From the NCBI GenBank assembly GCA_020891255.1, contig BQFW01000004.1, positions 620,001-684,000 of the forward strand: a DNA stretch of 64,000 nucleotides, written 5' to 3'. The notes under the pieces are model-generated. The model saw only the letters and a program-made list of their open reading frames with translations, ran no database searches and was not told where the DNA came from. The position numbers and the translations under genes are program-made. Each line of letters starts with the position of its first letter. Position 1 is the stretch's first letter. The stretch comes from Entomortierella parvispora E1425. Lineage: Eukaryota > Fungi > Mortierellomycota. Below are positions 40,324-58,912 of the stretch, in pieces.

Positions 40324-40512
40324 TGGTCGTGTGGTCACTCGTGGTTGCCGGTGGGAGCTTGCTGTTGTTGGCGATGATAATGCTGTTAATAAGAGGGAGG
40401 GAGAGCGCGAGGTCGATAAAGAGGATGGTGCTTCCAGCCAGCGCTCGAGAAAGGAAGGGATGAGTGAGGGCAGAAAAGAGAACGCTGTGGTCATGGGCAT
40501 GTGGTTTACAGC

Positions 40513-40626
40513 GGAGTGTATCCTCTGGATTGAAGTGTATCCTCTGGATTGAAGTGTATCCTCTGGATTGAAGTGCATCCTCTGGATTGAAGTGTATCCT
40601 CTGGATTGAAGTGTATCCTCTGGATT
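40513..40626. repeat. 19-bp tandem repeat (GAAGTGTATCCTCTGGATT) x6
   Basis: Six head-to-tail units with only two substitutions and no spacers, ~190 nt upstream of the protease ATG. Confidence 0.97.
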
Positions 40627-41482
40627 GGCTTGTGCAATGCTGCACAGTGAGAGAGCTCGGAAGACGACAAAGCAACGGTCGCTGCGAGAAAAGAGATTGT
40701 GACACAACGGAATGGGAGAGAATGGGGAAAGAGATGCAGCCAATGGAGGTGTGGATGCAATGGACAGAAGAAAGGACTGCCAGCCCATGTCTCTCCTCCT
40801 CACTCTTGGCTTGGCTCTCTCTTCTATCTCTGCCATTGCATTCGAGAGCGTCTCCCTCCCTCTTATCTCTCTCCGCGCATCGTCGGTCGACCAAAGGCAA
40901 AAGAAAAGAAAAAAAAAAAAAAGGTGTCTTACTGTACGTCCAAGACGCGTCTCTGCCCGCGTGTCACGGCCGCGTCTCTGTGCCAAAGAGACCCCTATAG
41001 TCATTGCTACCCTACTCTGTGTAGGAGCTCACCTACTTTATGTGTTTCCACGCTGTTGTGGCCCCACTCAATCCTGGTTCAATAATGTTTATGGATGGAT
41101 GCCCCTTTCTATTGCTCTCTTCCATCGCTAAACTCATGACCAGACAGGCACGCATCTCCCTTTGCTCTCCGTGAAGAGCCATAGCTCCGTGTCATTTCCA
41201 CGTAACCTTTGCTCTCGCCCCTGTCCAAGATCATATCGGATATGCACTGCTATGTAGCTAGCTGTATAACCGTCATTGCCGTCATTTTTTTCTTTGGGGT
41301 AACGAGCTCAACGCATCGGTCATTCTTTTTGACAACAGCGGGTCGGCTATCATTAAGGGTATACATTTTTTTTATTGCAACTTTGATCTTTCTACATACT
41401 GCGGTCTAAAGCGCCTAGTAAATAAAGAAGTGGAGTGCGAGACCAAACTATCTACAACCTGAGCAAAGCCGCGTGGTCGTCG

Positions 41483-42225
41483 TTGCAGCCCCGAAACGAC
41501 TCCAATGGTACCAACCATCGGACACGCTCTTGTGGGCATCACTTTACTCTGCTTTTCATGACTTGTCAGCCTTCCGACCCCCTGAGCAGGGACAGCTCAA
41601 AGCTCCGTTGGCATCGGCTTGTTCTGTCGTCACTGCTTACCAAGGACTGCTCCATTCGGCTCTGATCGAGGCCTGGAGGCCAATTATTAAAGGCCCTCGC
41701 TCTGTCGTGGTCGCCGTTGCTCATCAGTTTATTCGTCGTCTGGACAGGGATGCCTTAGCTCGGCTCTGGAAGACGCGCTGCGAAGTGACTATTGCATGGG
41801 AGAAGACACAAGGTATCCGCCCCAAGATGAAGAAGCAAGCCCAGACTGGGCAACCGTGGAACAATGCCTCTGGTACGATCTTACCACCGGACACTTGCCA
41901 ATGCGGAAAGCCTAACACCGACCACCATCAAGGCCTCTGCCCTGGTGCCCAAGACAATCCCACGCTGGCCGACCAGCGCTTACTGGCTTGTGTGCGTGGC
42001 CAGGTTCACTTATCGACATTAGAAAAGATGGGGAAGATCCATTTTTTGTAACATTTTACTCTTCTTTATTACACGGTGACGAGCCGTGGCATTTGTTGCG
42101 CGGGGATCCGGGGTCTTTGTTCGTCTGGACCACGCGGCTTTGCTCAGGTTGTAGATAGTTTGGTATCGCACTTCACTTCTTTGGCTCGACATAGCAAATA
42201 AAATGTTGCAAAAAAAAAAAAAAAA
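41483..42225 (+). mobile_element. 5'-truncated non-LTR retrotransposon copy nested in the previous element
   Basis: C-terminal ORF2 coding sequence to the stop at 42051, then 3'UTR and a 16-nt poly-A (42210-42225), flanked by the exact 20-bp repeat GCAAAGCCGCGTGGTCGTCG (41463-41482 and 42226-42245). Confidence 0.85.
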
Positions 42226-42881
42226 GCAAAGCCGCGTGGTCGTCGACCGCCACACAACTTTGCCTAGTAAGCGACAACGGGCAACACACGCAGGCCTTTG
42301 GGCAGTTTTGGCATCAGTAGTAGCAGAACGTGAGGGCCGCACAGAGGTTGAGTGGGTGCGTGGGCACAGTGGCGACCAGGGCAACGAAACGGCGGATGCT
42401 ATCGCAACAAAGGCGGTTGAACAGGACACGACACCATGGCAGGCGGACCTCAGCACCCAGGACGACATCACCTTTATTGCATCTTGCCATGGACAACAGT
42501 TGGAGTCCGACTTGCGCCAGTTCCTCAAGCAACAGACCACTATTCGCCGCCACCAAACATGGACAGCACAGAATCGAGTTAAGAGAGCGATCAGCGACTT
42601 GGACGACGTGGAGTGGCGATCTGCTCTCTCGATCATCCACGCCAAACGGCCAGTCCATACTTTCTTCAGTAGCAGAGGGGACACTACCCGACGCACACAG
42701 CACATCGAAAAACTGCATGGGATGCTACCAACACTCACAGTCATGCAAGCGCGCTACCCAGACATGTACGAAGACGCACTCTGCTGTCGATGTGGCGACG
42801 CGCAGGAGGACAACAACCATGTGTGGACTTGTCCGAACTCAGTCAACCAACAAAGGCAGATATGGGAGGAAGCAGTGGCCA

Positions 42882-43338
42882 CTATTCCAAAGTGGGGCAG
42901 AGCTGCCATCACCAGAGCCAATGAGGAAGCTACCAAAAGACATCGTAAGCAACAAGCCCGCACACCCAACGTTGCCGCCCCGAGAGCACTTCAATGGCAT
43001 CAGCCATCGGACACGGCTCTGTGGACATCACTGTACGCTGCATTCCACGACTTGCCAACAATAAGATCTCCTGAAGTGTAACAGTCCTTGGTAGGCAGTG
43101 ACGATCGACCGTGCCGATGGCAGTGGAGAGGCAGTCTGTCCCACTTCAGGAGATCTTATTGTTGGCAAGTCGTGGAATGCAGCGTACAGTGATGTCCACA
43201 GAGCCGTGTCCGATGGCTGATGCCATTGAAGTGCTCTCGGGGCGGCAACGTTGGGTGTGCGGGCTTGTTGCTTACGATGTCTTTTGGTAGCTTCCTCATT
43301 GGCTCTGGTGATGGCAGCTCTGCCCCACTTTGGAATAG
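42882..43338. repeat. 197-bp perfect inverted repeat with 63-bp spacer
   Basis: 42882-43078 is the reverse complement of 43142-43338. The ORF track shows an identical translation on both strands. Confidence 0.95.
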
Positions 43339-43446
43339 CACATCATTAAGGGTATACATTTGTGCACGTGACTTGATGTCGAGACCGGTGAAACAGTAAC
43401 TGCTATGAAGACTTCAAAAGAGAACACATAACATCAAAAAGTGTCT

Positions 43447-43518
43447 GGTCTGCTGGCCCAATGGAAAGGCGTCTGACTACGAATCAGGAGATTGCAGGTT
43501 CGACCCCTGCGTAGATCA
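43447..43518 (+). tRNA. tRNA-Arg(ACG)
   Basis: Acceptor stem GGTCTGC/GTAGATC, D-arm TGGCCCAATGGAAAGGC, anticodon arm TCTGA-CTACGAA-TCAGG, T-arm GCAGG-TTCGACC-CCTGC. Confidence 0.93.
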
Positions 43519-43610
43519 TAGGAACTTTCTTTTTATAACCAACGTGTTTTTTTGTTTAGCCCCGCGCGTGGCATTCTGCCACGGAAGGAAGGTGGATTTT
43601 TTTTTCGAAG

Positions 43611-44308: not shown

Positions 44309-45887
44309 TCTTATTTTTTTTTGCTTTACTCTGTCAAAGGTCTCGTAGGCAACACTGATGTTCATTCTCGATCAAGAGGCGACATACAGTTGAAAGACAG
44401 GCGGAGGAGGATATGGCCCCACTCCCTGATGGGTTTGCGCCTGTGGTATACTCCCCGGGTTGAGGTGCCAGTAGATCAGGAATCGAGGGGGAAGTGGAAG
44501 GAAGATAATCGGGGTGGAGTAAGACCAGCATGGTCAATGGGCCGATTTTTTTTTTGTCCAATTTTTTTTTCTCCTGACATTCACACTTTCACTCTCGCAC
44601 AAACTCCCCCCAAAACACCACACAACCCTGCTGCTGGCGCCCCTCCTTTCTGAGGCTCTGCTCGGGCTTCCACCCTTCGCGCGAAGACTACTTTCTGGAC
44701 TCGGTTCAGGCTGACGTCTTCACTTGCGCTATGCGTAAAGATTGCTGGGGGGCACTTAGCTCGTGCTGACGCACTCACGTTGATTTGCTAAGTAGCGGGG
44801 AGAAGAGAACAATGAAAAAAAAATCGATTGGTAGCGGCAACGCATGGTTGAGATAAGCAGAGCTGTAGACGCTAGGATCGTAGACGCTTTTTTGCAGGTA
44901 GATCGAGTATGAAAAGGTCATGGTTGGAGGATACCAAGGTCGGAGGAGAACTAGTCTATCAATAATTAGGGGTTGGCTGGACAATGGCGCGTCAGAACAG
45001 GCCCACCGCATGGCCGGTTCTGGTGACATCCCTATGTTTGTACGTACTACAGCATCGGCCTAGTTTATATCTATCTCCTACAAAATTTCAGGTACTCTGT
45101 TGATCATGTCCTATTTGGTGTTTGTCTGCCTACCAAGACTATGGGCATTCTCATGGAACACCACTGGACAAAAGCTCGAAGCAGTCGCACTCTTCATGTA
45201 GCTTGATGGCACTTTTTTTTTTTTTTTTTTTTTTTTGGCAAAGGACCCCCGAGGGGATGCCCGATGGACTGTGGCGGCCTACCTGCCAGATAGCTCTCCA
45301 GTTGCGCACATTCCAGATCCAAACTGTGATCCAGTCCAACAAACGACTCGATCGGAGAGAATAATAGAGGAGTTTGGGAATCGGTTTTGCCACCAAACGT
45401 GTGATAAAATTTTTCCTGTCTTGAAGAGGTGACCAAAAAGATTTTTCTTCTTTCACTTTTTCTTTCCCAAGCCCTTCTTCATCCTCCCTTCGCTCTCTCG
45501 TTATTCACTATTCACCTCATACCACCTCGCCGACAGTTGCCACCACGATGACTGCAGCACCCTTATTTGCTTGACTTTTTTTTTTTTTTTTTGCGGTCGT
45601 CCATCCCCCATTGTTGTATCGACACTCCCAGTCCAGCTCCTTTTTGACAAGAAACCCCTGGCAAGGTGCCCCACCACCACTCCTTGTTCATCACTACCTC
45701 TTCAACAGCACACTTCCAGAGCTTTTCCTGGTCCACCCAAGTCCACCTGGGTCCATCTGCCACATTCTGATACCTTTGACAATTGCTTTGTTGTTCGGTT
45801 GCCTGTTGTTCGGTTGCCTGGTCAACTGGGTCGGGTCAAGTGCCCAGTTGACCTAGTGGACCCACCGACAGGAAGCTCAGCACCTCC

Positions 45888-45927
<40 letters not shown>

Positions 45928-45928
45928 A

Positions 45929-46370
45929 CCTCACCACCTCAGTGTTCTTTCAAACTTGCCTACCTGCCTGCAGACGTTTCGCTGTCGACTTGAGAAGAAA
46001 GAAAAAAAGCGATCCCTTCCAGAGTTGTTGTTCTTGCCGACAGTGAGTGGCCTGCCCTCCACCCCACCACCACAGCACCTCTACTCGCTCTCTGTGCCTC
46101 ACCACCTCAGTGTCCTTTCAAACCTTCCTACTTGCCTCTCTGTCTGCAGACGTTTCGCTATCGACTTGTCGACTTGAGAGAAAAAAAGAAAAAAAAAGCG
46201 ATCCCTTCCAGAGTTGTCGTTCTTGCCGACAGTAAAAGGGCTGCCCTCTACCACCCCACCACAGCAGCTCTACTCCCCCTCGGTACCTCACCACCTCAGT
46301 GTCCTTCCAAACCTGCCTACCTACCTCTCTATCTGCAGACGTTTCGCTGTCGACTTGTCGACTTGCCAAA
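45929..46370. repeat. ~170-190 bp degenerate tandem repeat x2.5 inside left arm
   Basis: CCTCACCACCTCAGTG..GACGTTTCGCT(G/A)TCGACTTG units begin at 45929, 46097 and 46286, and are mirrored at ~58001-58425. Confidence 0.85.
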
Positions 46371-46427
46371 AAAAAAAAAAGAAAAAAGCGATCCTTTGCC
46401 TTTCCCCTCGCACAAAAGCAAAAGCAA

Positions 46428-46499
46428 AGGTCGATGCGAGGTTCGAACTCGCGTTGCCTGATTCAAAGTCAGGAGTACTAACCGCTATACTAATCAACC
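46428..46499 (-). tRNA. tRNA-Gln(TTG)
   Basis: Reverse complement of the 53263-53334 tRNA, identical over 72 nt. Confidence 0.93.
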
Positions 46500-47059
46500 A
46501 TTTTTGTTATTGAACTTTCTTTTCAACTTTTTCTATTTGAACTTCCGTGCCTGTGTTTGCACGTGATTTCATCTTGAGAAAACCAAAGTTGTCCCTGCAT
46601 TTTTGCATTTTGCACCTCCTCGGCGCCTGCGCTGCATCTTCGGGATAGTCACGGATCGATGGATCACCGTCAATTGCCATGGGTATGTTCGAAAAGGTCT
46701 TGGTCGTCGGTAGAGAAGGTAAGCATGAAAAAGATGTGTTTTTTTCCTTTTTTTTTTGATATCACACACGAACAAGCTACAGAATTTGCTGCGCGGGATA
46801 TCAGCAGCACGACTAGACTCGGACACCATCGAAATGTCAGTCTTTGGGCACTTTTATTGAACAGTTTACTTTTACTCCTACAATTGCGAATAAATGCTGT
46901 TAAGGACGAATTAAAGAAAATTATAGTAAAAAAATCAGTGAGTCATGGTCGTGGTAGAGGACTCGGCAGTGCTAGAATCAGCTTGGTGGGTCCACTAGGT
47001 CATGGGGTGAGGTAGAAATCAACACGTTGGCTCGGGGTATCGCGACTGGCAATCGCTGC

Positions 47060-47093
<34 letters not shown>

Positions 47094-47865
47094 CCGGCAT
47101 CGCGGTCATGGCTGGGCAGAAAAATCCGATCCATCTCTGTGGAATATCCTCTTTTTTTTGACGATATTTCCCATGTACAAGCCAGGGGAAGAATCAAAGC
47201 CGGATTACTAGAATGCTCCTGCAGCGAATGTATTCTGGTATGTCCTCAAGTAAAGTGAAAGACCGATATGATTGAGGTAGACCCGCATCTGGGACGCAAT
47301 GGTGACACACATCTTGAAGCAGGGTGCCATTTTATCAGCGGTGGAATCCAAAAAAAAAAAGTGAAGAGCTGTCATCAATCAATCTGAACGTAGAATGACA
47401 ACGAGTTGAACTTTTTTGAATCTGTGATATGAACGATTTAGGAGTTACGGGTAGAAGACTGTGTTGACTGAGAAGGAGTCTTATATTTGGAGCTGCTTGA
47501 TCAAACCGTCTGTTGTTTTCCTCTGTTCGGGAAAAGATGCTTTCTGTGCGTCTCCCGGCACAATTAGCAGACTCTCCAGTAAAGGCGATGGATTTTGAAA
47601 CTTGCATCACGAATTATCTTTGATAAAGCTAACCCGATGAAGTTTGAAGGGAGGTGAAAGGAATCAGCTGGCATTGAGCGATCGCTCAACAAAGAGAGTC
47701 AAAAATTATATCGAGCAAAATCAAGAAGTGTTGATTGTCATGCTCTTTGTTGAAGGCGCAATTGCAACGTACCAGACTAAGTAGACGCATTATGTATGAT
47801 GGAGGCCTCATAAAGATCATTTATTTGTAGACTGATATTGAAACTCTATAACGGTTTGTCATTAC

Positions 47866-50805
47866 TCACGAAATCAGAATGTTGCACTCTTCGCCTCTTT
47901 TGAACCTGTTCAGTTCTTCGTTAGAGACTTTCCACCTCAGGAGCGCCTTCTTGTTATCATTCCCAGATTTACTTTTCTTGTCCCTCTGTGCAGCCAACAC
48001 CCAGTAGCGCCGTGCGAGTTCCACAGGAAGATCAAAAATAGAAGTCATGTAAACGCGTTCGAATCTGGCCGATGTGCTTTCGTTGGGAAGCGAGCACGTA
48101 TGTGTTGGCGTTTTGAGCGCACCATTTGCGCCACAGTTCGGGAGGAAAGGCCTGCGATAGACGCATTGACGCGGCTTGTTACCACATTTCGCCAAAATAA
48201 TGGGCCACTGGCTTCGCCATTCGTGAGTGATGTATTTTATCATGAAGTCGATCTTGTATGAGTTCACCCAGCGGGTGTCGTTAGGACGAGAGTCGCTATC
48301 CACCTTGAAGCTGCACCGGACATGAGTCTCCAGATATCGATCCAATGCCATGATGATCAAGAATTCCGGGCTTGTGTCGTCGGTGTAATCATTGGAAGGG
48401 GCAGCCATAATCTTGATCCGGTTGGGAATCCATGGGCATCCCACCACAATATTCGAGGCCATTTCCAACTTCCATCCGCCAGCAGCTGTCACATGATCGT
48501 GGTCTTTGTCTGACAGGAGATCAAAGATGTTGTGGGCGTAATACAGCGGCTTCAGGTCGCAAATGTCGATGAGCTTGGCCTTTTCCCCCGTTGTTTCGTG
48601 GCAGTGGTGAGTGGTTTCAAGGCCTCCGATTTCCTCCCTGTCGCAGCCGCGGCATGTGGCGTGGAAATAATAGCTCGTGTTATACTGATCCCTACAGTAC
48701 TGGTCCATGTTGGCGACGGCACACTTGATACTATCCAAGGAGAACCCTGAACGCTCAACCCCGAACCTCTTGTTCCTGGTTATAAAGTCTTGAAGTGCGT
48801 CGGGATTGTTGACAAAATGCTGGGTGCCGTACGAGCGAGCGGACATGGACAAGTATTTGCCCTCCGGGACTTTGACAAACCAGTCTCGATGCTCTGTGCT
48901 ACAAGCCTCTACCGTCGAAGGACAAAACGACTTTAAGTGGTAGATACCCCGATCTTGGCGGTCCTTCAGAAACGTGCGATACTCGTTCCATTGTTCAATG
49001 CGAGCATTGAACTGAGGAGAAAGGTCAGATGGCACCAGTTCAACATTGGCTTGTAACATGGTGTCTGGCACAGGAGCTCCGAGGGCAACGGTCATGTCCC
49101 GCAATGGATAGCCTTTGGTATGGAACTCCTTCTCTGCATTCCTTGCCTTTGATGCATATTGACGTGAGGAAACCAGAGCCAATTGGCAAGCGGCCACCTC
49201 CTTCCGCTTTTCTTCAAACAACTCATGTAAGCTCGGGGAACCGGCAGAACCGGGCTTCTTCCACTCATCTTCGATGAACTGCCTGATTTCTTTCAAATCA
49301 TCAAGGGAACCTAGCAACCCCTTCCAGTCGAGAATGGCATGGCAGGCTGTGATGTACTTTGCCTTGCACAGGTAGTGGAGCTCACAATAAAGAGGAGCCA
49401 GCGAAGGATCATACGCAATATTGCCTGGGTCGCGTTCAGGTAAATGCAGAGCGTAATCTTGGGCCCCGGGGCCATAGCGGATGATAGAGAGGGTGCCGAT
49501 CACATCCATGAAAGCAGGGTGCCTCAGTTCGTCCCATTCGAAAGTATCATCACGCAAGGACTTGATTATATCGGGATCGTCCAGCATAGTTCCGTTAATG
49601 TCCGAGAGTACCTCGCTTGCCCCTGTTACCTGAGCAAGCATGTCTGACTGCAGGATGTTGGCAACCTTGGAAGAATGGCTCACGGCGAGTATGGGGCGTA
49701 GAAGTTGAAGATTCTGACAGAGAAGTGCAGCGGCGACGGCGACATCTTGATGGACTTCTGTAAACTGCCAAAAGTCCAGTCGAGGAATAGAAAGTCCAGG
49801 AATGAGATGACTGCGAATATGATGCTCAGCGCGAGGGGCTCGACCGGCAGTCAAGCTGTTGTAGGCGAAACCTCCCTTCATGGCCTCTAGAGGGATATCC
49901 TTTGAAATCAAGACCGAGAGCACTCGGCCTCTGTCTTTGCAAGTCTGGATGTTTTGGGTGTCCCCGATGATCTCATCCAAAGCTGTATCCGTGACCAAGG
50001 ACTTGGGATCCACTAGTTTTGAAAACACAGCATGGTTGAACTGTTGCTGTTCCTTGATACTGTTTTTCAGGTCGGTATGGGCGGGGGACGTCACCGGTTT
50101 GATCACCGCCAGTGGTGCAGCCTTGGCGAGCAGGGATTCGAGGTCCTTAGAAGGGGTCCAGCGATAAAAGTAGCCACCCGAGGCCGAGTTGAGGCAGTAC
50201 GGAAAGACAGTCGCGATCAGATTTTGCTCAATCTCGTCGTAAATGCTGAGTGCACGGACGTCCGTCTCTTGGTTCACAAGATGGCGGTGCAGTTCATAGA
50301 TCTTTTTTGGGTTTCTGTCGCGGCTAGGGAGGAGGCTCAGCAGGTTCTTGAGGCGACTCCATTTGGGATCCTCCTGGTCGTCTTTGGCGCGGCCTTGTGC
50401 AGTGGATCTGTAGGCCATCCCAACATACGGAATGAGTAGGGTCTTGTCTGGAGATTTATCCAGGATCGCCTGGGCCCACTCTTTGTCTGCGCTGTAGCTA
50501 TCTCTGTACTGCAAGAGTACTGTTCGAGGCACAGAGTAGAGGCGAAGGTAGTATTGAACATAGTCGCCAGAATTGGGTGGCGGCTGTGATTTAGAACAGA
50601 GCTTGAGCGTGGTCTTGGTTTTGGAAATGCTCAAGGGATCCTGAGCAACCTGGAGGAGAGGAGTCCAATTGCCCCGAAAACTTTGGAAAGATTCTTCGAG
50701 GTGGTTGTTAAGAGTTCGGAGAGACTGACGGGTGCGACCAGCATTAATGTGGAAAAGCAGATCCGATCCAGTATCCAAAGGAGCCGAGGATGAACTGGAG
50801 GACAT
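47866..50805 (-). CDS. Intronless 979-aa protein with GIY-YIG-like N-terminal motifs, a UDG-fold-like central segment and Cys/His-rich C-terminus
   Basis: Open 2.94-kb frame from ATG 50805 (MSSSSSSAPLDTG). Motifs YYLRLY..IPYVGMA..GRA..DEIEQNLIA..CLNSASGG, VLISKDIP..AG..LDFW..LRPILAVSHS, CRGC..THHC and CG..THTC. The CDS is well supported; the domain calls are pattern inference. Confidence 0.75.
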   Translation of the reverse strand: MSSSSSSAPLDTGSDLLFHINAGRTRQSLRTLNNHLEESFQSFRGNWTPLLQVAQDPLSISKTKTTLKLCSKSQPPPNSGDYVQYYLRLYSVPRTVLLQYRDSYSADKEWAQAILDKSPDKTLLIPYVGMAYRSTAQGRAKDDQEDPKWSRLKNLLSLLPSRDRNPKKIYELHRHLVNQETDVRALSIYDEIEQNLIATVFPYCLNSASGGYFYRWTPSKDLESLLAKAAPLAVIKPVTSPAHTDLKNSIKEQQQFNHAVFSKLVDPKSLVTDTALDEIIGDTQNIQTCKDRGRVLSVLISKDIPLEAMKGGFAYNSLTAGRAPRAEHHIRSHLIPGLSIPRLDFWQFTEVHQDVAVAAALLCQNLQLLRPILAVSHSSKVANILQSDMLAQVTGASEVLSDINGTMLDDPDIIKSLRDDTFEWDELRHPAFMDVIGTLSIIRYGPGAQDYALHLPERDPGNIAYDPSLAPLYCELHYLCKAKYITACHAILDWKGLLGSLDDLKEIRQFIEDEWKKPGSAGSPSLHELFEEKRKEVAACQLALVSSRQYASKARNAEKEFHTKGYPLRDMTVALGAPVPDTMLQANVELVPSDLSPQFNARIEQWNEYRTFLKDRQDRGIYHLKSFCPSTVEACSTEHRDWFVKVPEGKYLSMSARSYGTQHFVNNPDALQDFITRNKRFGVERSGFSLDSIKCAVANMDQYCRDQYNTSYYFHATCRGCDREEIGGLETTHHCHETTGEKAKLIDICDLKPLYYAHNIFDLLSDKDHDHVTAAGGWKLEMASNIVVGCPWIPNRIKIMAAPSNDYTDDTSPEFLIIMALDRYLETHVRCSFKVDSDSRPNDTRWVNSYKIDFMIKYITHEWRSQWPIILAKCGNKPRQCVYRRPFLPNCGANGALKTPTHTCSLPNESTSARFERVYMTSIFDLPVELARRYWVLAAQRDKKSKSGNDNKKALLRWKVSNEELNRFKRGEECNILIS

Positions 50806-52601
50806 TATTTTGGGAATGATAGCGCGGGAACGGAGCTGAGAAGACTGGGTGAGTCGTACTGCAAAAGCAAATAGCAGAAAAAACAGCAAATAGCAGAAAA
50901 AACAGCAAAAATTTGTGAGGATCAGTACTATGTATATTTTTTCAACGCTGAGAGGCAGATGGAGATTGCAAACGAAGTAAAGGCCAATACTTACGAGCAA
51001 GATATGATGAAGTAAGAGCTGACGCGAAATGTCGTTTGACTTTGCGAAGGATGAACCTAGTACTCGATGCCGTAGAATCAGAGGGTGGTACGTGGTTCCA
51101 AGGCGAAAGGCAAGTAGCCAAACGATCCAGGGGCGAGTAAGGAAAGAGTAGGGGCAGGTGGAGAGAACAATAGAAATAACAGTGAATGAAGCGAACAATG
51201 GGTTGAGAGAACAGTGGGCAACTGGAGGGAACGGTAGGTAGAGAGAACGGTGGGTAGAGAGAACAGTAGGCGAAGAGAACAGGGGGTGGGTGAGAAGGTG
51301 AAGGAACAAGAGATCTGGTTTGAAAACGGGAGGGTACTGAAGGTGCTTTTATCTTCATGACCCGGCGCAGAAGAGAGTGGTGGACAAAAACGAAAGCGAA
51401 AACTTGTGGATACACGCTTTTTTGTTTGATCAAAGACAGTTGCATGCGCACAGTTGATTGTCCCGATACAGATCGGGCAATCAGGCAGATACCGCAAAGC
51501 GTCGAAGCGACCGTTGCGCATCCGAGCGCCACTATTATTATCATTTCGTTCTGGGGGGTACACACTTTTAGTGTGGCAAAGTTCCGACAACATGGGAACA
51601 TGGGAGAAAAGGCAGAGCAAACAAAGAGACGCGCCTGCAGTCGTAGTGGCGGTGATGTCCACGCGCGAGAGATGCGTGCATGCACGAAATCTGAAAATGG
51701 GTGGCTTGTATTTGAACATGTTGGCATGTTGGATAGAATCACTCGGACAAAGAGCATGTTTATTGTGATGCTTGTGAGGCCATAGCTAGGCCGTTTCTGG
51801 GAAAAACAACGACAGGGTAGTACCACAGCTATCAGAAGGGGACATGGTGGTGAAAATATCAGCTACAGATGGCAATAGCTACCTTTGGGTCATTTTTTTT
51901 TATATTGTCCACAACTGGTACCGAAGGAATTTCCATAGTGGACAACTGTGACACAGCTGACGAGACATCACCTGGCCAAACAACTCCAGGGAACGCTTGG
52001 CCTGCATATGTGGTGTCCAGATTGGGTGATAAAGGATGGAGACCGACTGTATTCTCATGTTCGATTTCAATCGCTCCACGCAACAAGAGGGACGCGAGGG
52101 ATTGTCGCGTCGATTGTTGCTGATAAGAGGTCAAAGAGAGGAAGGAGGGAGATCAAAGGAAATGATCACCCACTTTTGTACAGAGCAGAGAATAGCTGAC
52201 ACGAAAATAGACAACAGGCACGTCGATCGAGATGAGAGGATCAGTACGCGCGCGTTGCCCAATTTTGCCTAGGATCTTTGCCTGAGCACATTGGACGGAC
52301 GCCTCAAATCCCGACCGACTGCTGTCCACGCCTGCGACACTGGTCATACAGGGGTTCCGCTATCGATGGTGACACCCCTGCACTCATCTGTAGGTCCATC
52401 TCACTGCCAAATCCGACCGTAGGAACGCTCGCCTTCCGTCCAATTCTATCTCCTCTGACTCGCCATCCACGTTCATAGCTGGTTACTTTGTAGTATAGAC
52501 CTTGCCATATCCTAGTTGGCCCTCACACTATACCATTAAAACCTATGTCCCCAAACTCCATTGTTTGACCGTGCCAGTCTGAAGGGGGAAAAAAAAAAGA
52601 A

Positions 52602-52667
52602 AAAAAAAAGAGGATATTCCACAGAGATGGATCGGATTTTTCTGCCCAGCCATGACCGCGATGCCGG

Positions 52668-52703
<36 letters not shown>

Positions 52704-53392
52704 GCAGCGATTGCCAGTCGCGATACCCCGAGCCAACGTGTTGATTTCTACCTCACCCCATGACCTAGTGGACCCACCAAGCTGATTCTAGCACTGCCGA
52801 GTCCTCTACCACGACCATGACTCACTGATTTTTTTACTATAATTTTCTTTAATTCGTCCTTAACAGCATTTATTCGCAATTGTAGGAGTAAAAGTAAACT
52901 GTTCAATAAAAGTGCCCAAAGACTGACATTTCGATGGTGTCCGAGTCTAGTCGTGCTGCTGATATCCCGCGCAGCAAATTCTGTAGCTTGTTCGTGTGTG
53001 ATATCAAAAAAAAAAGGAAAAAACACATCTTTTTCATGCTTACCTTCTCTACCGACGACCAAGACCTTTTCGAACATACCCATGGCAATTGACGGTGATC
53101 CATCGATCCGTGACTATCCCGAAGATGCAGCGCAGGCGCCGAGGAGGTGCAAAATGCAAAAATGCAGGGACAACTTTGGTTTTCTCAAGATGAAATCACG
53201 TGCAAACACAGGCACGGAAGTTCAAATAGAAAAAGTTGAAAAGAAAGTTCAATAACAAAAATGGTTGATTAGTATAGCGGTTAGTACTCCTGACTTTGAA
53301 TCAGGCAACGCGAGTTCGAACCTCGCATCGACCTTTGCTTTTGCTTTTGTGCGAGGGGAAAGGCAAAGGATCGCTTTTTTCTTTTTTTTTTT
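52602..53392. repeat. Right arm, inner part, of large inverted repeat
   Basis: Near-identical reverse complement of 46381-47159, differing mainly in homopolymer lengths. Confidence 0.95.
53263..53334 (+). tRNA. tRNA-Gln(TTG)
   Basis: Acceptor stem GGTTGAT/ATCGACC, anticodon arm CCTGA-CTTTGAA-TCAGG, T-arm GCGAG-TTCGAAC-CTCGC, followed by T-rich terminator-like runs. Confidence 0.93.
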
Positions 53393-53530
53393 GGGTTTAT
53401 CTATTTGACAACCCAGGTTGTTCGTTTTACCTGACAACCCACTCTATATTTGGTTAGTCTCGTTTTTTATTCGGCAACCCACCTGTCATTCCTCAATTGA
53501 CAACCCAGGTTGCCAAACAAACGTTTATTT

Positions 53531-54743
53531 TTATGAGTGCTGTCTAGAATTGTGACCTTCCCCGCTGCACACTCCACACTTCGTTGATTTTTTTTTTGTC
53601 TCCATGCTGCTCTTTATCCGAGAAGTCCTCGGTCTGCCCTTCGTCTTTGTATAGTGAGGATCCTTCATACCTTCTTCGCCTGCCCCCCTCACAATGACAC
53701 GGTTTAGGCCATCTTTAACTGTTTCGAATACTTCTGGATTGGAGTTCACGGTGTCCATGATATTCTTCATCAGGCCAGATATCTCTCCAATGCGGCGTTT
53801 TTTGGAAAGGTTGCGTTTATCAACCCCCGACAGGGATGGCACTGAGGGGAAAACCTTCATGATATCGCTCATGAAAGAAGAAGCAGGCTCTCCCTCTGCA
53901 CTCCCCACCTGAGCGACCGTCTTCTGCGTTTTTGCGCTCAAAAACGCCCCTGAGAGATCAAGATCTGTTAGGTCCTGCAGTTCTTCTTTAAACCACCGCA
54001 TCGGAATAAGCCTGACATGATACTTGCATCTGTCACTAACTTGCATCAGATGGAAATAGTGTCGACATACAAATCCGCTGTTTTGGAGGAGGAGGCAAGT
54101 ACAAATGTACGAGCCATCAGCCAGTAAAAGTATGTGCTGAAGTGACTTTCGCTCCGTGTCCAAGCGGAACGTCACGTCGAAGATTTGTACAATTCGATCA
54201 GAACCAACGATTGTCTGGATGGACTGGAGAGAGCTCATTTCGCGATTGTCTTTTGACGATCTCTCAATCTAAGGACAAAGAGAAGAATAACGGCTTAGTA
54301 CCTCTATCTGGTCTTAGGATTGCGCTTGGGTATTGGAATGATGTACAAGTACTTACTTCCTCGAAATCACCTCCTTCGATTGATCGTGGAGCACAGGCGT
54401 CTATACCTGTGTGTGGATTGGACTGATACAAAACAGAGCGCGACATCTCTAACTTCATCTGACTTTTTGCTGCGATGCCAAGATAGCGATTGTTTGCATC
54501 GATAACATCGGCAAACATTTGCTGAACAAACATCGACGTTGCGGGATCAACCGTTGTATCCGTCTTGTAGAGAATATACTTTGAAGTCTGGGCTTCATTT
54601 GATAGCTTCTTTTCAATTGCCTCGAACAGTGCTGGAAGGGACGTCTTGCCATTGACGGCCCTTTTGATGGCCGCATTCATACTCTCCACACGCTGAGTCG
54701 ACTGTGGCTGTATTGATCTGCCGTCGGTCAACCCCTCGGTCAA
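53531..54743 (-). pseudogene. C-terminal remnant of MULE/FAR1-type transposase
   Basis: QSTQRVESMNAAIK motif, intron 54356-54269 (GTAAGT..TAG, frame kept), SWIM finger CTC..CRH, RW motif, KGRP and CGVC-GHN knuckle. The DDE core upstream is missing and is replaced by the tandem array. Confidence 0.85.
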
Positions 54744-56039
54744 ATAAAAAAAAAAGCCTTTGCATGCAACAGTAGACCATTCCTAATTGGGACTTCTGGC
54801 GACTCGCAAGGACTCGCAAGACGGTATGTGTACCATGGTCGGCCAAAAGAAAAAAAAAGATCCATTTTGCCTTCTGTATGCATGCAATTGACAGACATCC
54901 CCTAGGTCATAGAGGATGATAGTCCAGTGGGCTCTGACCTTGTCTGAATCAGAAGACTGGAGCGGGTATCAGCTGTGTTTCTTTCCTCTTGTATTGATCT
55001 ACCCCCGGGTCAACCCTCGGTCAAATAAAAAAAAAAATCCTCTGCATGCAAGTAAACCATTCCTAATTGGGACTTCTGGCGACTCGCAAGGACTCGCAAG
55101 ACGGTACGTGTACCATGGTCGGCCAAAAGAAAAAAAAAGATCCATTTTGCCTTCTGTATGCATGCAATTGACAGACATCCCCTAGGTCATAGAGGATGAT
55201 AGTCCAGTGGGCTCTGACCTTGTCCGGTCCGGAAGACTGGAGCGGGTATCAGCTGTGTTTTCTTTCCTCTTGTATTGATCTACCCCCGGTCAACCCTCGG
55301 TCAAATAAAAAAAAAAATCCTCTGCATGCAAGTAAACCATTCCTAATTGGGACTTCTGGCGACTCGCAAGGACTCGCAAGACGGTACGTGTACCATGGTC
55401 GGCCAAAAGAAAAAAAAAGATCCATTTTGCCTTCTGTATGCATGCAATTGACAGACATCCCCTAGGTCATAGAGGATGATAGTCCAGTGGGCTCTGACCT
55501 TGTCCGGTCCGGAAGACTGGAGCGGGTATCAGCTGTGTTTCTTTCCTCTTGTATTGATCTACCCCCGGTCAACCCTCGGTCAAATAAAAAAAAAAACCTC
55601 TGCATGCAACAGTAGACCATTCCTAATTGGGACTTCTGGCGACTCGCAAGGACTCGCAAGACGGTATGTGTACCATGATCGGCCAAAAGAAAAAAAAAGA
55701 TCCATTTTGCCTTCTGTATGCATGCAATTGACAGACATCCCCTAGGTCATAGAGGGTGACAGTCCAGTGGGCTCTGACCTTGTCCGGTCCGGAAGACTGG
55801 AGCGGGTATCAGCTGTTTTCTTTCCTCTTGTATTGATCTATCCCCGGTCAACCCTCGGTCAAATAAAAAAAAAAGCCTTTGCATGCAACAGTAGACCATT
55901 CCTAATTGGGACTTCTGGCGACTCGCAAGGACTCGCAAGACGGTATGTGTACCATGGTCGGCCAAAAGAAAAAAAAGATACAGTTTGCCCTCTGTATGCA
56001 TGCCATTGACAGACATCCCCTAGGTCATAGAGGATGATG
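54708..56039. repeat. 280-bp tandem repeat, ~4.8 copies
   Basis: The anchor CCTAGGTCATAGAGG recurs at 54901, 55181, 55461, 55741 and 56019. Units are highly similar and there are no spacers. Confidence 0.97.
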
Positions 56040-56195
56040 GTCCCACATGTTCTTCTGGTTCGAAACAAAGGGACTGACTCGACTGACTCGTACATCCAGG
56101 CTTCTTGTGTCAGCAACTCCCACATGTATAAATATGTGTACTTGCGGCATCCAGTTCTGTATCTTGTCCTCCTCATCGTTCTCACCTCTTCCAAC

Positions 56196-57047
56196 ATGCC
56201 TCGTGGTGCTTGCACTTACGGCTATTGCGCGCTAGGTCTCCTCCCCCCTGCCGAACCCAAGACCAAAAATCAGAAGAACCATGTTGCAGGGTATCACGTC
56301 GACAACCCCATCAAGTTCATGTGCGGGTACACTGATCGACAAGTCACCTTTAGTCGAATTCCCACAAAACACATGGATTTCGTCTGCTACTGTGGCCTGA
56401 CGTTCACCCTTAACTCTTCGATCCATCGCCATTACCATTACTGTGCCGTTGCCAGGGACGCCGCCCTAAATGCAATCGCACATCCACCTCCTCCTGGTGC
56501 AGGTGGTGCAGGCGATGGCAATGGCGTTATTGTTGCGCCGGCGCCTCCTTCAACGGCCCTGGTGGTAGCGGAGCGCAGCGTCGGGAGCATTCTGGAGGAA
56601 AAGTTGATTGAGCAACATCAAGCCTTCCTGGAGACGTTCACAGGACAGAGCGCGAAGCTCGTCGAGAGCATGACCCAGTCTCAGTTGTCGTTTCTGAACA
56701 CCTTCACCGCTTCGTATGCTGAACAAGCTGTGGCACATCAGCGCAGCATCGCTGAACATAACCGCTTGGCCTTAGAGGAGCAGCGCACGGCCCTCGAGGA
56801 GCAGCGAGCTGCCATTGAGATGCAGCGAGCAGCTGTTGAGGAACAGAGAGTGTTCTACAATCGCCATCAAAACAATCAAGCAGAGATAATGGCCGAGCAG
56901 AAGCTTACAAGGGACGAGGTTAGAAACCTCATGTCACTCAAGCGCGATCGATCTTTCACGTTGGAAGTCAGCGAGCGAGCACTCAAAGGCCTTCAGAGTG
57001 ACCCATCTTACATGGTCAGCCCCTGCCAGGACGACGAGGACATGTGA
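56196..57047 (+). CDS. Hypothetical 283-aa protein inside the MULE (Cys/His finger-like N-terminus, coiled-coil C-terminus)
   Basis: Open frame from ATG 56196 with CYCGLTFTLNSSIHRHYHYC and heptad-like EEQRTALEEQRAAIEMQRAAVEEQR. An AATAAA signal follows the stop. Confidence 0.6.
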   Translation: MPRGACTYGYCALGLLPPAEPKTKNQKNHVAGYHVDNPIKFMCGYTDRQVTFSRIPTKHMDFVCYCGLTFTLNSSIHRHYHYCAVARDAALNAIAHPPPPGAGGAGDGNGVIVAPAPPSTALVVAERSVGSILEEKLIEQHQAFLETFTGQSAKLVESMTQSQLSFLNTFTASYAEQAVAHQRSIAEHNRLALEEQRTALEEQRAAIEMQRAAVEEQRVFYNRHQNNQAEIMAEQKLTRDEVRNLMSLKRDRSFTLEVSERALKGLQSDPSYMVSPCQDDEDM

Positions 57048-57161
57048 AAGACAGATAGTGCGCAATCCCACGTCGACGAAGTGTAACAGGTTATGTTCGC
57101 AATTATTCAATAAAAATATTCTTGCGAAATATCTTCTGATGCTATGGCGGACGCGGTGGAC

Positions 57162-57885
57162 TTTTTTTTTTTTTACATATTATTTGCTATGTCGAGACAG
57201 TGAAGCGAAGTGCGAGAACAAACTACTAACAATGAAGCCCGAATCCCCGCGCAACAAATGCCACGACTCATCGCTGTTTAATAAAGAATAAAATGTTACA
57301 AAAGTGTCGATATATGAACCTGGCCACGCACACCAGCCAGTAAGCGCTGGTCTGCCAGCTTAGGGTCATCTTGGGCATCTGGGCAACGGCCTTGGTGGTG
57401 GCCGGAGTGAGGTTTACCGCATTGGCAGGTGTCTGGTGGTAAGATCGTACCAGATGCATTGTTCCAAGGTTGGCCTCGCTGTGCTTGCTTCTTCATCTTG
57501 GAGCGGATGCCTTGAGTCTTCTCCCAGGCAATAGTAACCTCGCCGTGTGTCTTCCGGAAACGTGCAAGAGTATCCCTATCCTGACGACGGATAAGTTGAT
57601 GAGCAACTGCGACCACGACCGAGTGAGGGCCTTTAATAATTGGAGTCCAGGCCTTGATCGAAGCGCAGTGTAACACTCCTTGGTAGGCAGTGACGACCGA
57701 CTGAGCCGATGCCAACGGGGCTGGTGCCAACGGGCTGGTGATCTGTCCCCTCACAGGAGGTCAGGTCGTTGGCGAGTCATGGAAGGCAGAGTACAATGAT
57801 GTCCACAAAGCCGTGTCCGATGGCTGGTACCATGGAGGCGGTTTCGGGCGGCAACTTCGGGTTTGCGGGCTTGTTGCGAACGAGG
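57162..57885 (-). mobile_element. Degenerate 3' fragment of the same non-LTR retrotransposon family
   Basis: T13 at 57162-57174 (poly-A), with 3'UTR and coding similarity to 41483-42225 (WEKTQGIR.KMKKQAQ.GQPWNNASGTILPPDTCQCGKP). Confidence 0.85.
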
Positions 57886-57990
57886 TGGAGCTCACTATCT
57901 GACAACCCAGGTTTCCATGCAATTTTCCAAAGTGTGACTGGTGGGTTGTCAAACAAAACGAACAACCTGGGTTGTCAAATAGATAAATCC

Positions 57991-58430
57991 TTTTTTTTTT
58001 TGGCAAGTCGACAAGTCGACAGCGAAACGTCTGCAGATAGAGAGGTAGGTAGGCAGGTTTGGAAGGACACTGAGGTGGTGAGGTACCGAGGGGGAGTAGA
58101 GCTGCTGTGGTGGGGTGGTAGAGGGCAGCCCTTTCACTGTCGGCAAGAACGACAACTCTGGAAGGGATTGCCGGGTGTTTTTTTTCTCAAGTCGACAGCG
58201 AAACGTCTGCAGGCAGAGAGGCAAGTAGGAAGGTTTGAAAGGACACTGAGGTGGTGAGGCACAGAGAGCGAGTAGAGGTGCTGTGGTGGTGGGGTGGAGG
58301 GCAGGCCATTCACTGTCGGCAAGAACAACAACTCTGGAAGGGATCGCTTTTTTTCTTTCTTCTCAAGTCGACAGCGAAACGTCTGCAGGCAGGTAGGCAA
58401 GTTTGAAAGAACACTGAGGTGGTGTGTGTA

Positions 58431-58479
<49 letters not shown>

Positions 58480-58912
58480 CTGAGGTAGTGAACTGGGGGT
58501 GGCAGTGGATAACAGTCTTCTACTCTTTTCGGCTCCAACTGAGTTTTTTTTTTTCTTTGACCAGGGGATGGGCCGACTGCACTGAAAAAAAAAAGAGGTA
58601 GAGAGACCTTTACTCGTCAAAGACAACCCTTTTGGCCAGGTCAGTTGAAAAGAGAAAACTGGCAGAGTTGGAAAAAGTCAACCGTTGCAGTCCTGTCGGT
58701 GGGTCCACAAGGTCAACTGGGCACTTGACCCGACCCAGTTGACCAGGCAACCGAACAACAGGCAACCGAACAACAAAGCAATTGTCAAAGGTATCAGAAT
58801 GTGGCAGATGGACCCAGGTGGACTTGGGTGGACCAGGAAAAGCTCTGGAAGTGTGCTGTTGAAGAGGTAGTGATGAACAAGGAGTGGTGGTGCTGGTGGT
58901 GGGGCACCTTGC
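57991..58912. repeat. Right arm, outer part, of large inverted repeat
   Basis: Reverse complement of 45661-46380 with substitutions and an extra ~190-bp block (~58480-58688). Confidence 0.9.

Follow-up and report, generated by a model that had tools for sequence, protein, structure and literature searches.

The 64,000-nt window analysed here, positions 620,001 to 684,000 of contig BQFW01000004.1 (assembly GCA_020891255.1), comes from Entomortierella parvispora E1425, a soil fungus of the Mortierellomycota (genome announcement, PMC8759367). On its minus strand, at window positions 47866-50805, lies an intact 979-codon gene with its stop codon at 47866-47868. The product of this open reading frame (ORF) is 100% identical to the NCBI hypothetical protein EMPS_02793, which is present once in the 38.9-Mb, 20-contig assembly. 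EMPS_02793 combines in one polypeptide a GIY-YIG domain, a divergent domain of the uracil-DNA glycosylase (UDG) superfamily, a helical middle region and two Cys/His zinc modules. Two inverted arms, each about 1.5 kb long and 96-100% identical to each other, enclose the 5.44-kb core (47160-52601) in which the gene is found.

The whole protein is held by a single open frame on the minus strand (47866-51309 in the ORF listing of the window). The methionine at 50805 is the first to coincide with the start of the relatives, and the 168 codons before it are of low complexity. The protein was therefore taken to comprise 979 residues, and the stretch 5' of this methionine looks non-coding. The NCBI model is 889 residues long, with about 750 nt spliced out after Cys874. 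This intron (window 47430-48183) is unusually long for E. parvispora, and its removal deletes the conserved second Cys/His module and appends a 15-residue tail. Homologues (33-41 of them aligned there) continue through the stretch with C874, C904, P927 and R932 conserved past the NCBI splice point. The ORF read without the 3' intron is thus the better model, and the intron is probably wrong. Two adjacent genes were ruled out by the one uninterrupted ORF. An assembly artefact was also ruled out: a transposon insertion and variation in the tandem repeats set the two arms apart, and the contig, 2.9 Mb long, has the locus in its middle.

The N-terminal part of the protein resembles GIY-YIG nucleases. 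A GIY-YIG-type nuclease domain was assigned to residues 82-209 (50179-50562, minus strand) from the topology of the structural model and from conserved residues. Its elements follow in the order beta1 (Y86, R88), a helical hairpin (94-117), beta2 (Y127-x-G129), a helix (R139, D143), beta3 and a helix with E193, and the loop N206-S-A-S-G-G completes the domain. In the model, the strands span residues 82-93, 122-132 and 168-176 and form the three-stranded antiparallel sheet of a beta-beta-alpha-beta-alpha core with flanking helices. Residue counts were taken from a 100-sequence family alignment. Near-invariant in this domain are Y86 (67/70), R88 (69/70), Y127 (78/79), G129 (79/80), (T131), R139 (78/80), D143, E193 (79/80), N206 (81/83), S207, A208, G210 and G211. 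The E. parvispora copy retains every near-invariant residue of the family except T131, which is Ala. GIY-YIG nucleases have an Arg about 8-12 residues after YIG, then a metal-binding Glu and an Asn further on; here the spacings leading to R139, E193 and N206 are 12, 54 and 13 residues, similar to those of I-TevI.

The original prediction, made from the sequence alone, had read a GIY-YIG nuclease from five short motifs, and these lie where it placed them: YYLRLY begins at 50553, PYVG occupies 50430-50419, the downstream Arg is R139 at 50391, EIEQ spans 50235-50224 and LNSASGG spans 50193-50173. It had also proposed that the Tyr, Arg, Glu and Asn residues be checked among homologues; Y86, Y127, R139, E193 and N206 are 96-99% conserved. 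A separate model of residues 1-290 reached a predicted local distance difference test (pLDDT) score of 90.5. When this model was compared with 48,161 chains in a search that does not lean on Foldseek, I-TevI was found at rank 1 and was followed by EndoII and PD-T4-3; the rest of the rows matched just the helical hairpin at 235-290. A phage 'intron associated endonuclease' was among the matches of a BFVD search. Foldseek on the N-terminal model, with a second look by VIA, listed no GIY-YIG chain. A genome scan with PF01541 matched mitochondrial homing endonucleases and another nuclear locus and left EMPS_02793 unmatched. With hhalign, the GIY-YIG-like profile gave no match, with or without the hairpin, to 2-3 of the genome's own mitochondrial GIY-YIG proteins, a template too thin to weigh against the assignment. 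Because of the fitting topology and the conservation of the catalytic-type residues, it is probable that residues 82-209 belong to the GIY-YIG superfamily, and judged by these residues the domain looks catalytically intact.

The second domain, residues 243-500 (49306-50079, minus strand), was assigned to the UDG superfamily from fold matches of the model. AlphaFold2, run on the whole protein with the 100-sequence alignment, gave a mean pLDDT of 83.5 and a predicted template modelling score of 0.72, with residues 10-550 mostly above 90. A Foldseek search of the PDB placed family-4 UDGs, UdgX and TDG at the top (E 7e-3, probability 1.0). Re-alignment by VIA to the family-4 UDG 1ui0 gave a value of 15.3, with a root-mean-square deviation of 2.8 A over 183/192 residues (model residues 249-500); the values were about 14 for UdgX, 11.6 for SMUG1 and about 11 for TDG. 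In the Foldseek-independent search of the 48,161 chains, ranks 1-14 were all held by UDG-superfamily structures. The domain has an alpha/beta fold with the central four-stranded parallel sheet of the UDG superfamily. In the predicted structure, a UDG fold for residues 243-500 is firmly supported. Fold prediction for each domain had been chosen beforehand as the trial of the two-domain idea, and the idea survives, with both predicted folds matching. The VLISKDIPLEAMKGG...LRPILAVSHS block, named in the same prediction, was likewise located, at about 49925-49670. A genome scan with PF03167 found two other loci and not EMPS_02793, even at E<=10. The UDG-like profile gave no match to the genome's own UNG in hhalign, where this UNG made too thin a template to count against the fold.

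The UDG-like domain carries motifs of its own. These are [ST]-K302-D303-[IV]-[TP] after beta1, G321, D/N344-x-W346 on beta2, H352, P371...S378 on beta3 and D459-x-G461-x-x-K-Y465-D-P467 after beta4. Near-invariant among them are K302 (77/90, 86%), D303 (85/90, 94%), G321, Asp or Asn at 344 (83/86), W346, H352, P371 (88/90, 98%), S378 (82/87, 94%), G461 (96%), Y465 and P467. In secondary-structure register, the first motif would stand at the place of the UDG motif A, with D303 corresponding to the catalytic Asp of family 1. By the same register, D/N344-x-W346 would end beta2, where UDGs put their base-reading Asn, and the D459-to-P467 motif would take the place of motif B. The strong conservation at these places argues for a preserved pocket function.

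The remainder of the protein is less well defined. Residues 501-700 (48706-49305, minus strand) form a mostly helical middle region or linker in the alignment and the model. Within it R602, W642 and F643 are conserved, and loops at 552-569 and 678-688 are modelled with low confidence. The few structure comparisons made with residues 501-700 and 570-979 gave no fold match. The first zinc module, residues ~705-765 (48511-48693, minus strand), was recognised from the alignment, the model and a weak PDB profile match. It is a CCHC beta-ribbon, C718-x2-C721...H733-x-C735, followed by a conserved H758-D/N759 (...NIFDL). Its four Cys and His residues are 94-100% conserved (C718 54/54, C721 49/50, H733 48/49, C735 46/49), the model has beta-strands at 713-754, and the weak match is zinc-ribbon-like, to ribosomal S31e/S27a. 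The second Cys/His module, residues ~866-925 (48031-48210, minus strand), has C874, C881, C891, H902 and C904, then ...SIFDL. Two C-terminal Cys/His clusters, each with an IFDL segment after it, had been noted, and they are present at residues 718-735 and 874-904. The likeness of the two modules holds above shuffled sequences (local alignment 36 versus 22.9 +/- 3.9, with 11/2000 shuffles reaching 36) and is modest only. Near-invariant residues towards the C-terminus are R602, W642, C718, C721, H733, C735, H758, D/N759, D822, W846, C874, C904 and R932.

EMPS_02793 belongs to a fungal family. A profile search of 1.84 billion representative proteins returned 239 at E<=1e-3 and 100 at E<=1e-10. 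At least 55 of 150 listed relatives match profile positions ~120-590 in a single stretch, so that the two-domain module appears as the conserved unit. All 30 members looked up by name are fungal proteins labelled 'hypothetical protein', with no Ascomycota or non-fungal member among the 30. They come from the Mortierellomycota (Mortierella, Podila, Linnemannia), the Mucoromycota (Apophysomyces, Phascolomyces) and the Basidiomycota (Mycena, Rickenella, Rhodotorula, Rhodosporidiobolus, Microbotryomycetes, Tilletia). Pfam gave no match to EMPS_02793 at E<=1 and none to 39 relatives, two long gene models aside, which carry stray UCH and HMG-box fusions. Sequence searches of the PDB with a single sequence, three sequences and the 100-sequence profile returned noise and a weak zinc-ribbon hint. 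A word-based protein search found three close proteins only, to which the 100-sequence profile added none. Neither half drew a usable match from the ESM Atlas, where the score of one GIY-YIG cluster, 0.81, was below significance.

The tree of the core tracks fungal taxonomy, with 100% support for the Mortierellomycota clade and very long branches. Protein identity is just 35% between genera of one fungal family. Divergent paralogues are found within Rickenella mellea in the tree and, judged by name, also in Mycena filopes and Microbotryomycetes JL201. The closest relative, 61% identical in protein, is encoded on a 2.8-kb metagenome contig (L007), the one contig that a metagenome scan returned. 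Against this relative, the ratio of nonsynonymous to synonymous substitution rates is 0.31 overall (629 codons), 0.33 in the GIY-YIG domain (residues 82-209), 0.30 in the UDG-like domain (residues 243-500), 0.17 beyond residue 500 and about 1.1 in the N-terminal 81 residues. Judged by these ratios, EMPS_02793 is a functional gene kept by purifying selection. On the evidence of the alignments and the tree, the family to which it belongs is old, evolves fast and is without annotation. The L007 contig has no tRNA gene and no upstream sequence in common with the E. parvispora locus. At 2439-2451 its reading frame changes, through what could be a frameshift, an error of sequencing or a very small intron, and because of this change the gene is split into the predicted proteins P0002 and P0006.

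The arms around the gene contain a pair of tRNA genes. The left arm (45661-47159) holds tandem repeats of 176-189 bp and a tRNA-Gln gene. The right arm is in two parts: the inner (52602-53392) is 99-100% complementary to 46370-47159, and the outer (57991-58912) is the 86-100% identical counterpart of 45661-46378, from which it departs in the tandem repeats. The repeats, at 45916-46372 and 58012-58363, cause most of the difference between the arms. The core occurs once in the genome, and the arms nowhere beyond the arm pair. Pfam gave no match on the scanned core ORFs of at least 91 residues. Identical tRNA-Gln(UUG) genes are found in the left arm (46428-46499, minus strand, 64 bits) and in the right arm (53263-53334, plus strand). 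No other tRNA-Gln(UUG) gene was found in the assembly, whether by exact search or with a relaxed pattern of the anticodon arm and T arm, and six tRNA-Gln(CUG) copies lie elsewhere. The tRNA-Gln(UUG) gene is probably essential. If the two-copy count holds, the sole decoder of CAA exists just as an inverted pair around EMPS_02793. On contig 8, at 1696847-1697125, two tRNA-Gln(CUG) genes also stand inverted, with about 250 bp between them, so the EMPS_02793 locus is not alone in having an inverted tRNA-Gln pair. Since the arms hold the only tRNA-Gln(UUG) genes found, they are read as host DNA and not as transposon ends; conversion would keep the inverted tRNA-Gln pair alike, or the pair would be a recent duplication.

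The right arm is split by a nested DNA transposon of 4.6 kb (53393-57990), MULE-like by its ends. Its terminal inverted repeats are 50 nt long, and a 9-bp target duplication falls in a run of T's (11+11 T's versus 13 in the unfilled arm). At least 10 copies exist in the genome, one of them, on contig 11, 100% identical. Its ORFs (53531-54743, minus strand) contain a SWIM-like Cys/His motif and have no Pfam match, and a 280-bp tandem array lies within it at 54698-56043. Other features lie upstream of the arm structure: a seven-copy 19-bp tandem repeat (40477-40646), a 203-bp near-perfect palindrome (42882-43338; 99% identity, 51-nt spacer) and a tRNA-Arg(ACG) gene (43446-43519). The stretches 41481-43338 and 57162-57886 have further repeat families in common.

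How might a protein with these domains act? The reading favoured here, with a probability of roughly 0.55, is a base-directed enzyme that nicks or cleaves DNA, in which the UDG-like pocket would select a flipped base and the GIY-YIG domain would cut beside it. The zinc modules and the UDG-like domain would bind DNA, and the latter would flip a specific base (damaged, mismatched or modified) out of the helix. The domain would excise that base, with D/N344 and the conserved K302-D303 loop taking part, or would do no more than read it, and the GIY-YIG domain would cut the phosphodiester backbone adjoining the site. One self-contained enzyme would both find its base and nick or break the DNA there. 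Glycosylases of the UDG superfamily lack a lyase activity, so that the incision would come from the fused nuclease. Precedents for such a coupling are the COG1833-endonuclease III fusion, the UDG-family defence enzymes Brig1 and Brig2 and PD-T4-3, a GIY-YIG enzyme with a modified-base reader. Housekeeping repair is a less likely biological role than a selfish (homing-like) one or one in conflict or defence, because of the patchy distribution, the rapid divergence, the paralogues within genomes and the transposon-rich setting. The genome has, elsewhere, a canonical family-1 UNG (DPYH...HPSPLS) as well as a second UDG-family locus, so EMPS_02793 would not be the housekeeping enzyme. The 35% identity between genera, the divergent paralogues and the ratio of about 1.1 in the N-terminal 81 residues also speak against a housekeeping role.

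Several points weigh against base-directed cleavage and a selfish role. In the family alignment, motif A (GQDPY/GEAPG/GINPG/GMNPG) is absent after beta1, where [ST]-K302-D303-[IV]-[TP]-x-E is found instead. The alignment has no conserved His for motif B (HPSPLS/HPS) after beta4, and the family-4 4Fe-4S cysteines are missing, no Cys in residues 243-500 reaching 70% conservation. Of the predicted UDG-type domain, the fold thus stands, with family-4 UDGs and UdgX as top matches, while the canonical catalytic signatures do not. The pocket placement of K302, D303 and D344 comes from secondary-structure register, not from superposition. A poxvirus polymerase with a non-catalytic UDG-fold subunit (8q3r) is among the structure matches. 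Finally, the taxonomy-congruent tree and the single copy are as compatible with an ordinary host gene as with a selfish one.

With motif A, the motif-B His and the Fe-S cysteines missing, the UDG-like domain may be a binding module rather than a glycosylase. The best-surviving alternative builds on this point. In it, the domain is catalytically dead and serves the GIY-YIG nuclease as a scaffold or as a DNA- or protein-binding module. UDG folds are reused in this way, non-catalytic or attached to polymerases (8q3r, 9qhs; phage polymerases). The alternative, itself compatible with the other readings, is possible but is regarded as doubtful, since the positions of the pocket motifs (K302/D303, D/N344, P371, S378 and G461) are among the best conserved of the protein.

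An unlikely account is that of a free-standing nuclear endonuclease gene of the homing or drive type, whose product would cut in or near the tRNA-Gln region, or at an allelic empty site, so that repair of the break would spread the gene. Repeated rounds of cutting and gene conversion would then have homogenised the inverted arms as a side effect. The closest GIY-YIG structure, I-TevI, is a homing endonuclease, and identity between the arms is 99-100% over their inner 790 bp despite the later transposon landing, which fits ongoing conversion. Fast protein evolution with conserved catalytic residues also agrees with such an enzyme, as does a site between the only copies found of a probably essential tRNA gene, where deletion would be costly. 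However, the analysis covers one locus only, which offers no presence/absence polymorphism or target site for comparison, and the tree is congruent with taxonomy. The inverted tRNA-Gln(CUG) pair on contig 8 stands without such a gene, so the arm arrangement may be ordinary.

Less probable again is a host genome-maintenance protein, inherited vertically in fungi, in which an active glycosylase and a nuclease would carry out specialised base-excision or incision repair. The tree that tracks taxonomy with its fully supported Mortierellomycota clade, purifying selection on both domains and the single copy in E. parvispora are what such a gene would show, and the glycosylase-plus-nuclease logic is like that of the COG1833-EndoIII fusion (PMC1564403). 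Nevertheless, the genome already has a canonical UNG as well as a second UDG-family gene, and the canonical UDG catalytic motifs are absent from this protein. The lack of Ascomycota and non-fungal members among the 30 looked up, the very long branches inside one fungal family and the paralogue expansions in the transposon-rich Mycena genomes likewise speak against housekeeping.

The least credible proposal makes the gene the transposase or mobility gene of a DNA transposon with long terminal inverted repeats at 45661-58912: near-perfect 1.5-kb inverted repeats around a one-gene core, a transposon-rich neighbourhood with a nested multi-copy element and a patchily distributed family with many fragmentary gene models would suit it, but gene and core are single in the genome, the arms occur only as a pair and resemble host DNA in holding the only tRNA-Gln(UUG) genes found, the 61%-identical relative does not have the upstream sequence in common, no target-site duplication is visible at the outer ends of the arms (45660/58913), GIY-YIG enzymes hydrolyse DNA and are not known to perform strand transfer, and thus among the marks of this transposon class the inverted repeats are present while target-site duplication, extra copies and a transposase fold were not found.

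A wider picture can be drawn tentatively from the favoured base-directed enzyme. EMPS_02793 may represent a novel class of eukaryotic nuclear base-directed endonucleases, in which a re-tooled UDG pocket would pick a modified or unusual base (e.g., a cytosine or adenine derivative) and a GIY-YIG domain would break the strand. Judged by register only, Asp/Asn 344 would stand at the place of the uracil-reading Asn of UNG. The enzyme would act in selfish homing or drive or in genome defence, lodged between the sole tRNA-Gln(UUG) genes, and the inverted arrangement of the tRNA pair would guard the gene against deletion. Provided that the protein is active, it would tie single-base recognition to DNA cleavage in one compact eukaryotic enzyme. 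It would be relevant to fungal genome conflict (transposon control, homing, drive) and to the biology of DNA modification in early-diverging fungi and basidiomycetes, and it could be a scaffold for modification-dependent nicking tools. The analysis also amends the public gene model of EMPS_02793 and draws attention to an unusual locus, in which a probably essential tRNA gene was found solely as an inverted pair around this gene.

Several known systems can be compared with EMPS_02793. In I-TevI (1ln0), 87/92 residues align with the beta-beta-alpha-beta-alpha core of the fungal domain. The order Tyr, Tyr-x-Gly, Arg, Glu, Asn and its conservation are the same as in I-TevI, T4 endonuclease II (2wsh) and PD-T4-3 (9u75). 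In contrast to canonical members, which have 10-11 residues between the Tyr strands, the fungal domain has 41, including the helical hairpin. It also has the extra invariant residues R88 and D143 and escapes PF01541 and Foldseek. The UDG-like domain is 8-14% identical in sequence to family-4 UDGs and UdgX (Thermus thermophilus UDGA 1ui0, Thermotoga 1l9g, Mycobacterium UdgX 6ail). Unlike these, it is without the GE[AG]PG motif A, the HPS motif B and the Fe-S cysteines, PF03167 is blind to it, and it has its own [ST]-K-D-[IV]-[TP] and D-x-G-x-x-K-Y-D-P motifs, with a helical insertion of about 50 residues after beta3. It also sits inside a 979-residue multidomain eukaryotic protein.

In the Methanococcales, a COG1833 GIY-YIG domain is fused to endonuclease III (Dunin-Horkawicz et al., 2006; PMC1564403). 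This was the only fusion of a GIY-YIG domain and a glycosylase found in the literature searched. Both proteins join a GIY-YIG domain in one polypeptide to a DNA glycosylase or, in the fungal protein, to a glycosylase-type domain, and the archaeal one has been proposed to incise beside the excised base. Its glycosylase is of the helix-hairpin-helix type with its own apurinic/apyrimidinic lyase, rather than of the UDG fold, and the archaeal fusion is without zinc modules. Divergent UDG-family proteins are used in defence: Brig1 and Brig2 recognise non-standard bases in foreign or phage DNA (PMC11078745; bioRxiv 10.1101/2025.10.29.685425). In PD-T4-3, a GIY-YIG nuclease is coupled to a reader of modified bases. 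Brig1, Brig2 and the type IV GIY-YIG restriction enzymes are prokaryotic, consist of a glycosylase only or use other reader folds, and are likened to the fungal protein by fold alone. No description of a GIY-YIG-UDG-fold fusion was found in the literature searched; the protein has no Pfam family and is annotated only as a 'hypothetical protein'. Both folds are already known, as is the coupling of a glycosylase to a nuclease in principle. What is new, on the alignments and models presented here, is their predicted fusion in one protein with pocket motifs of its own, conserved across three fungal phyla.

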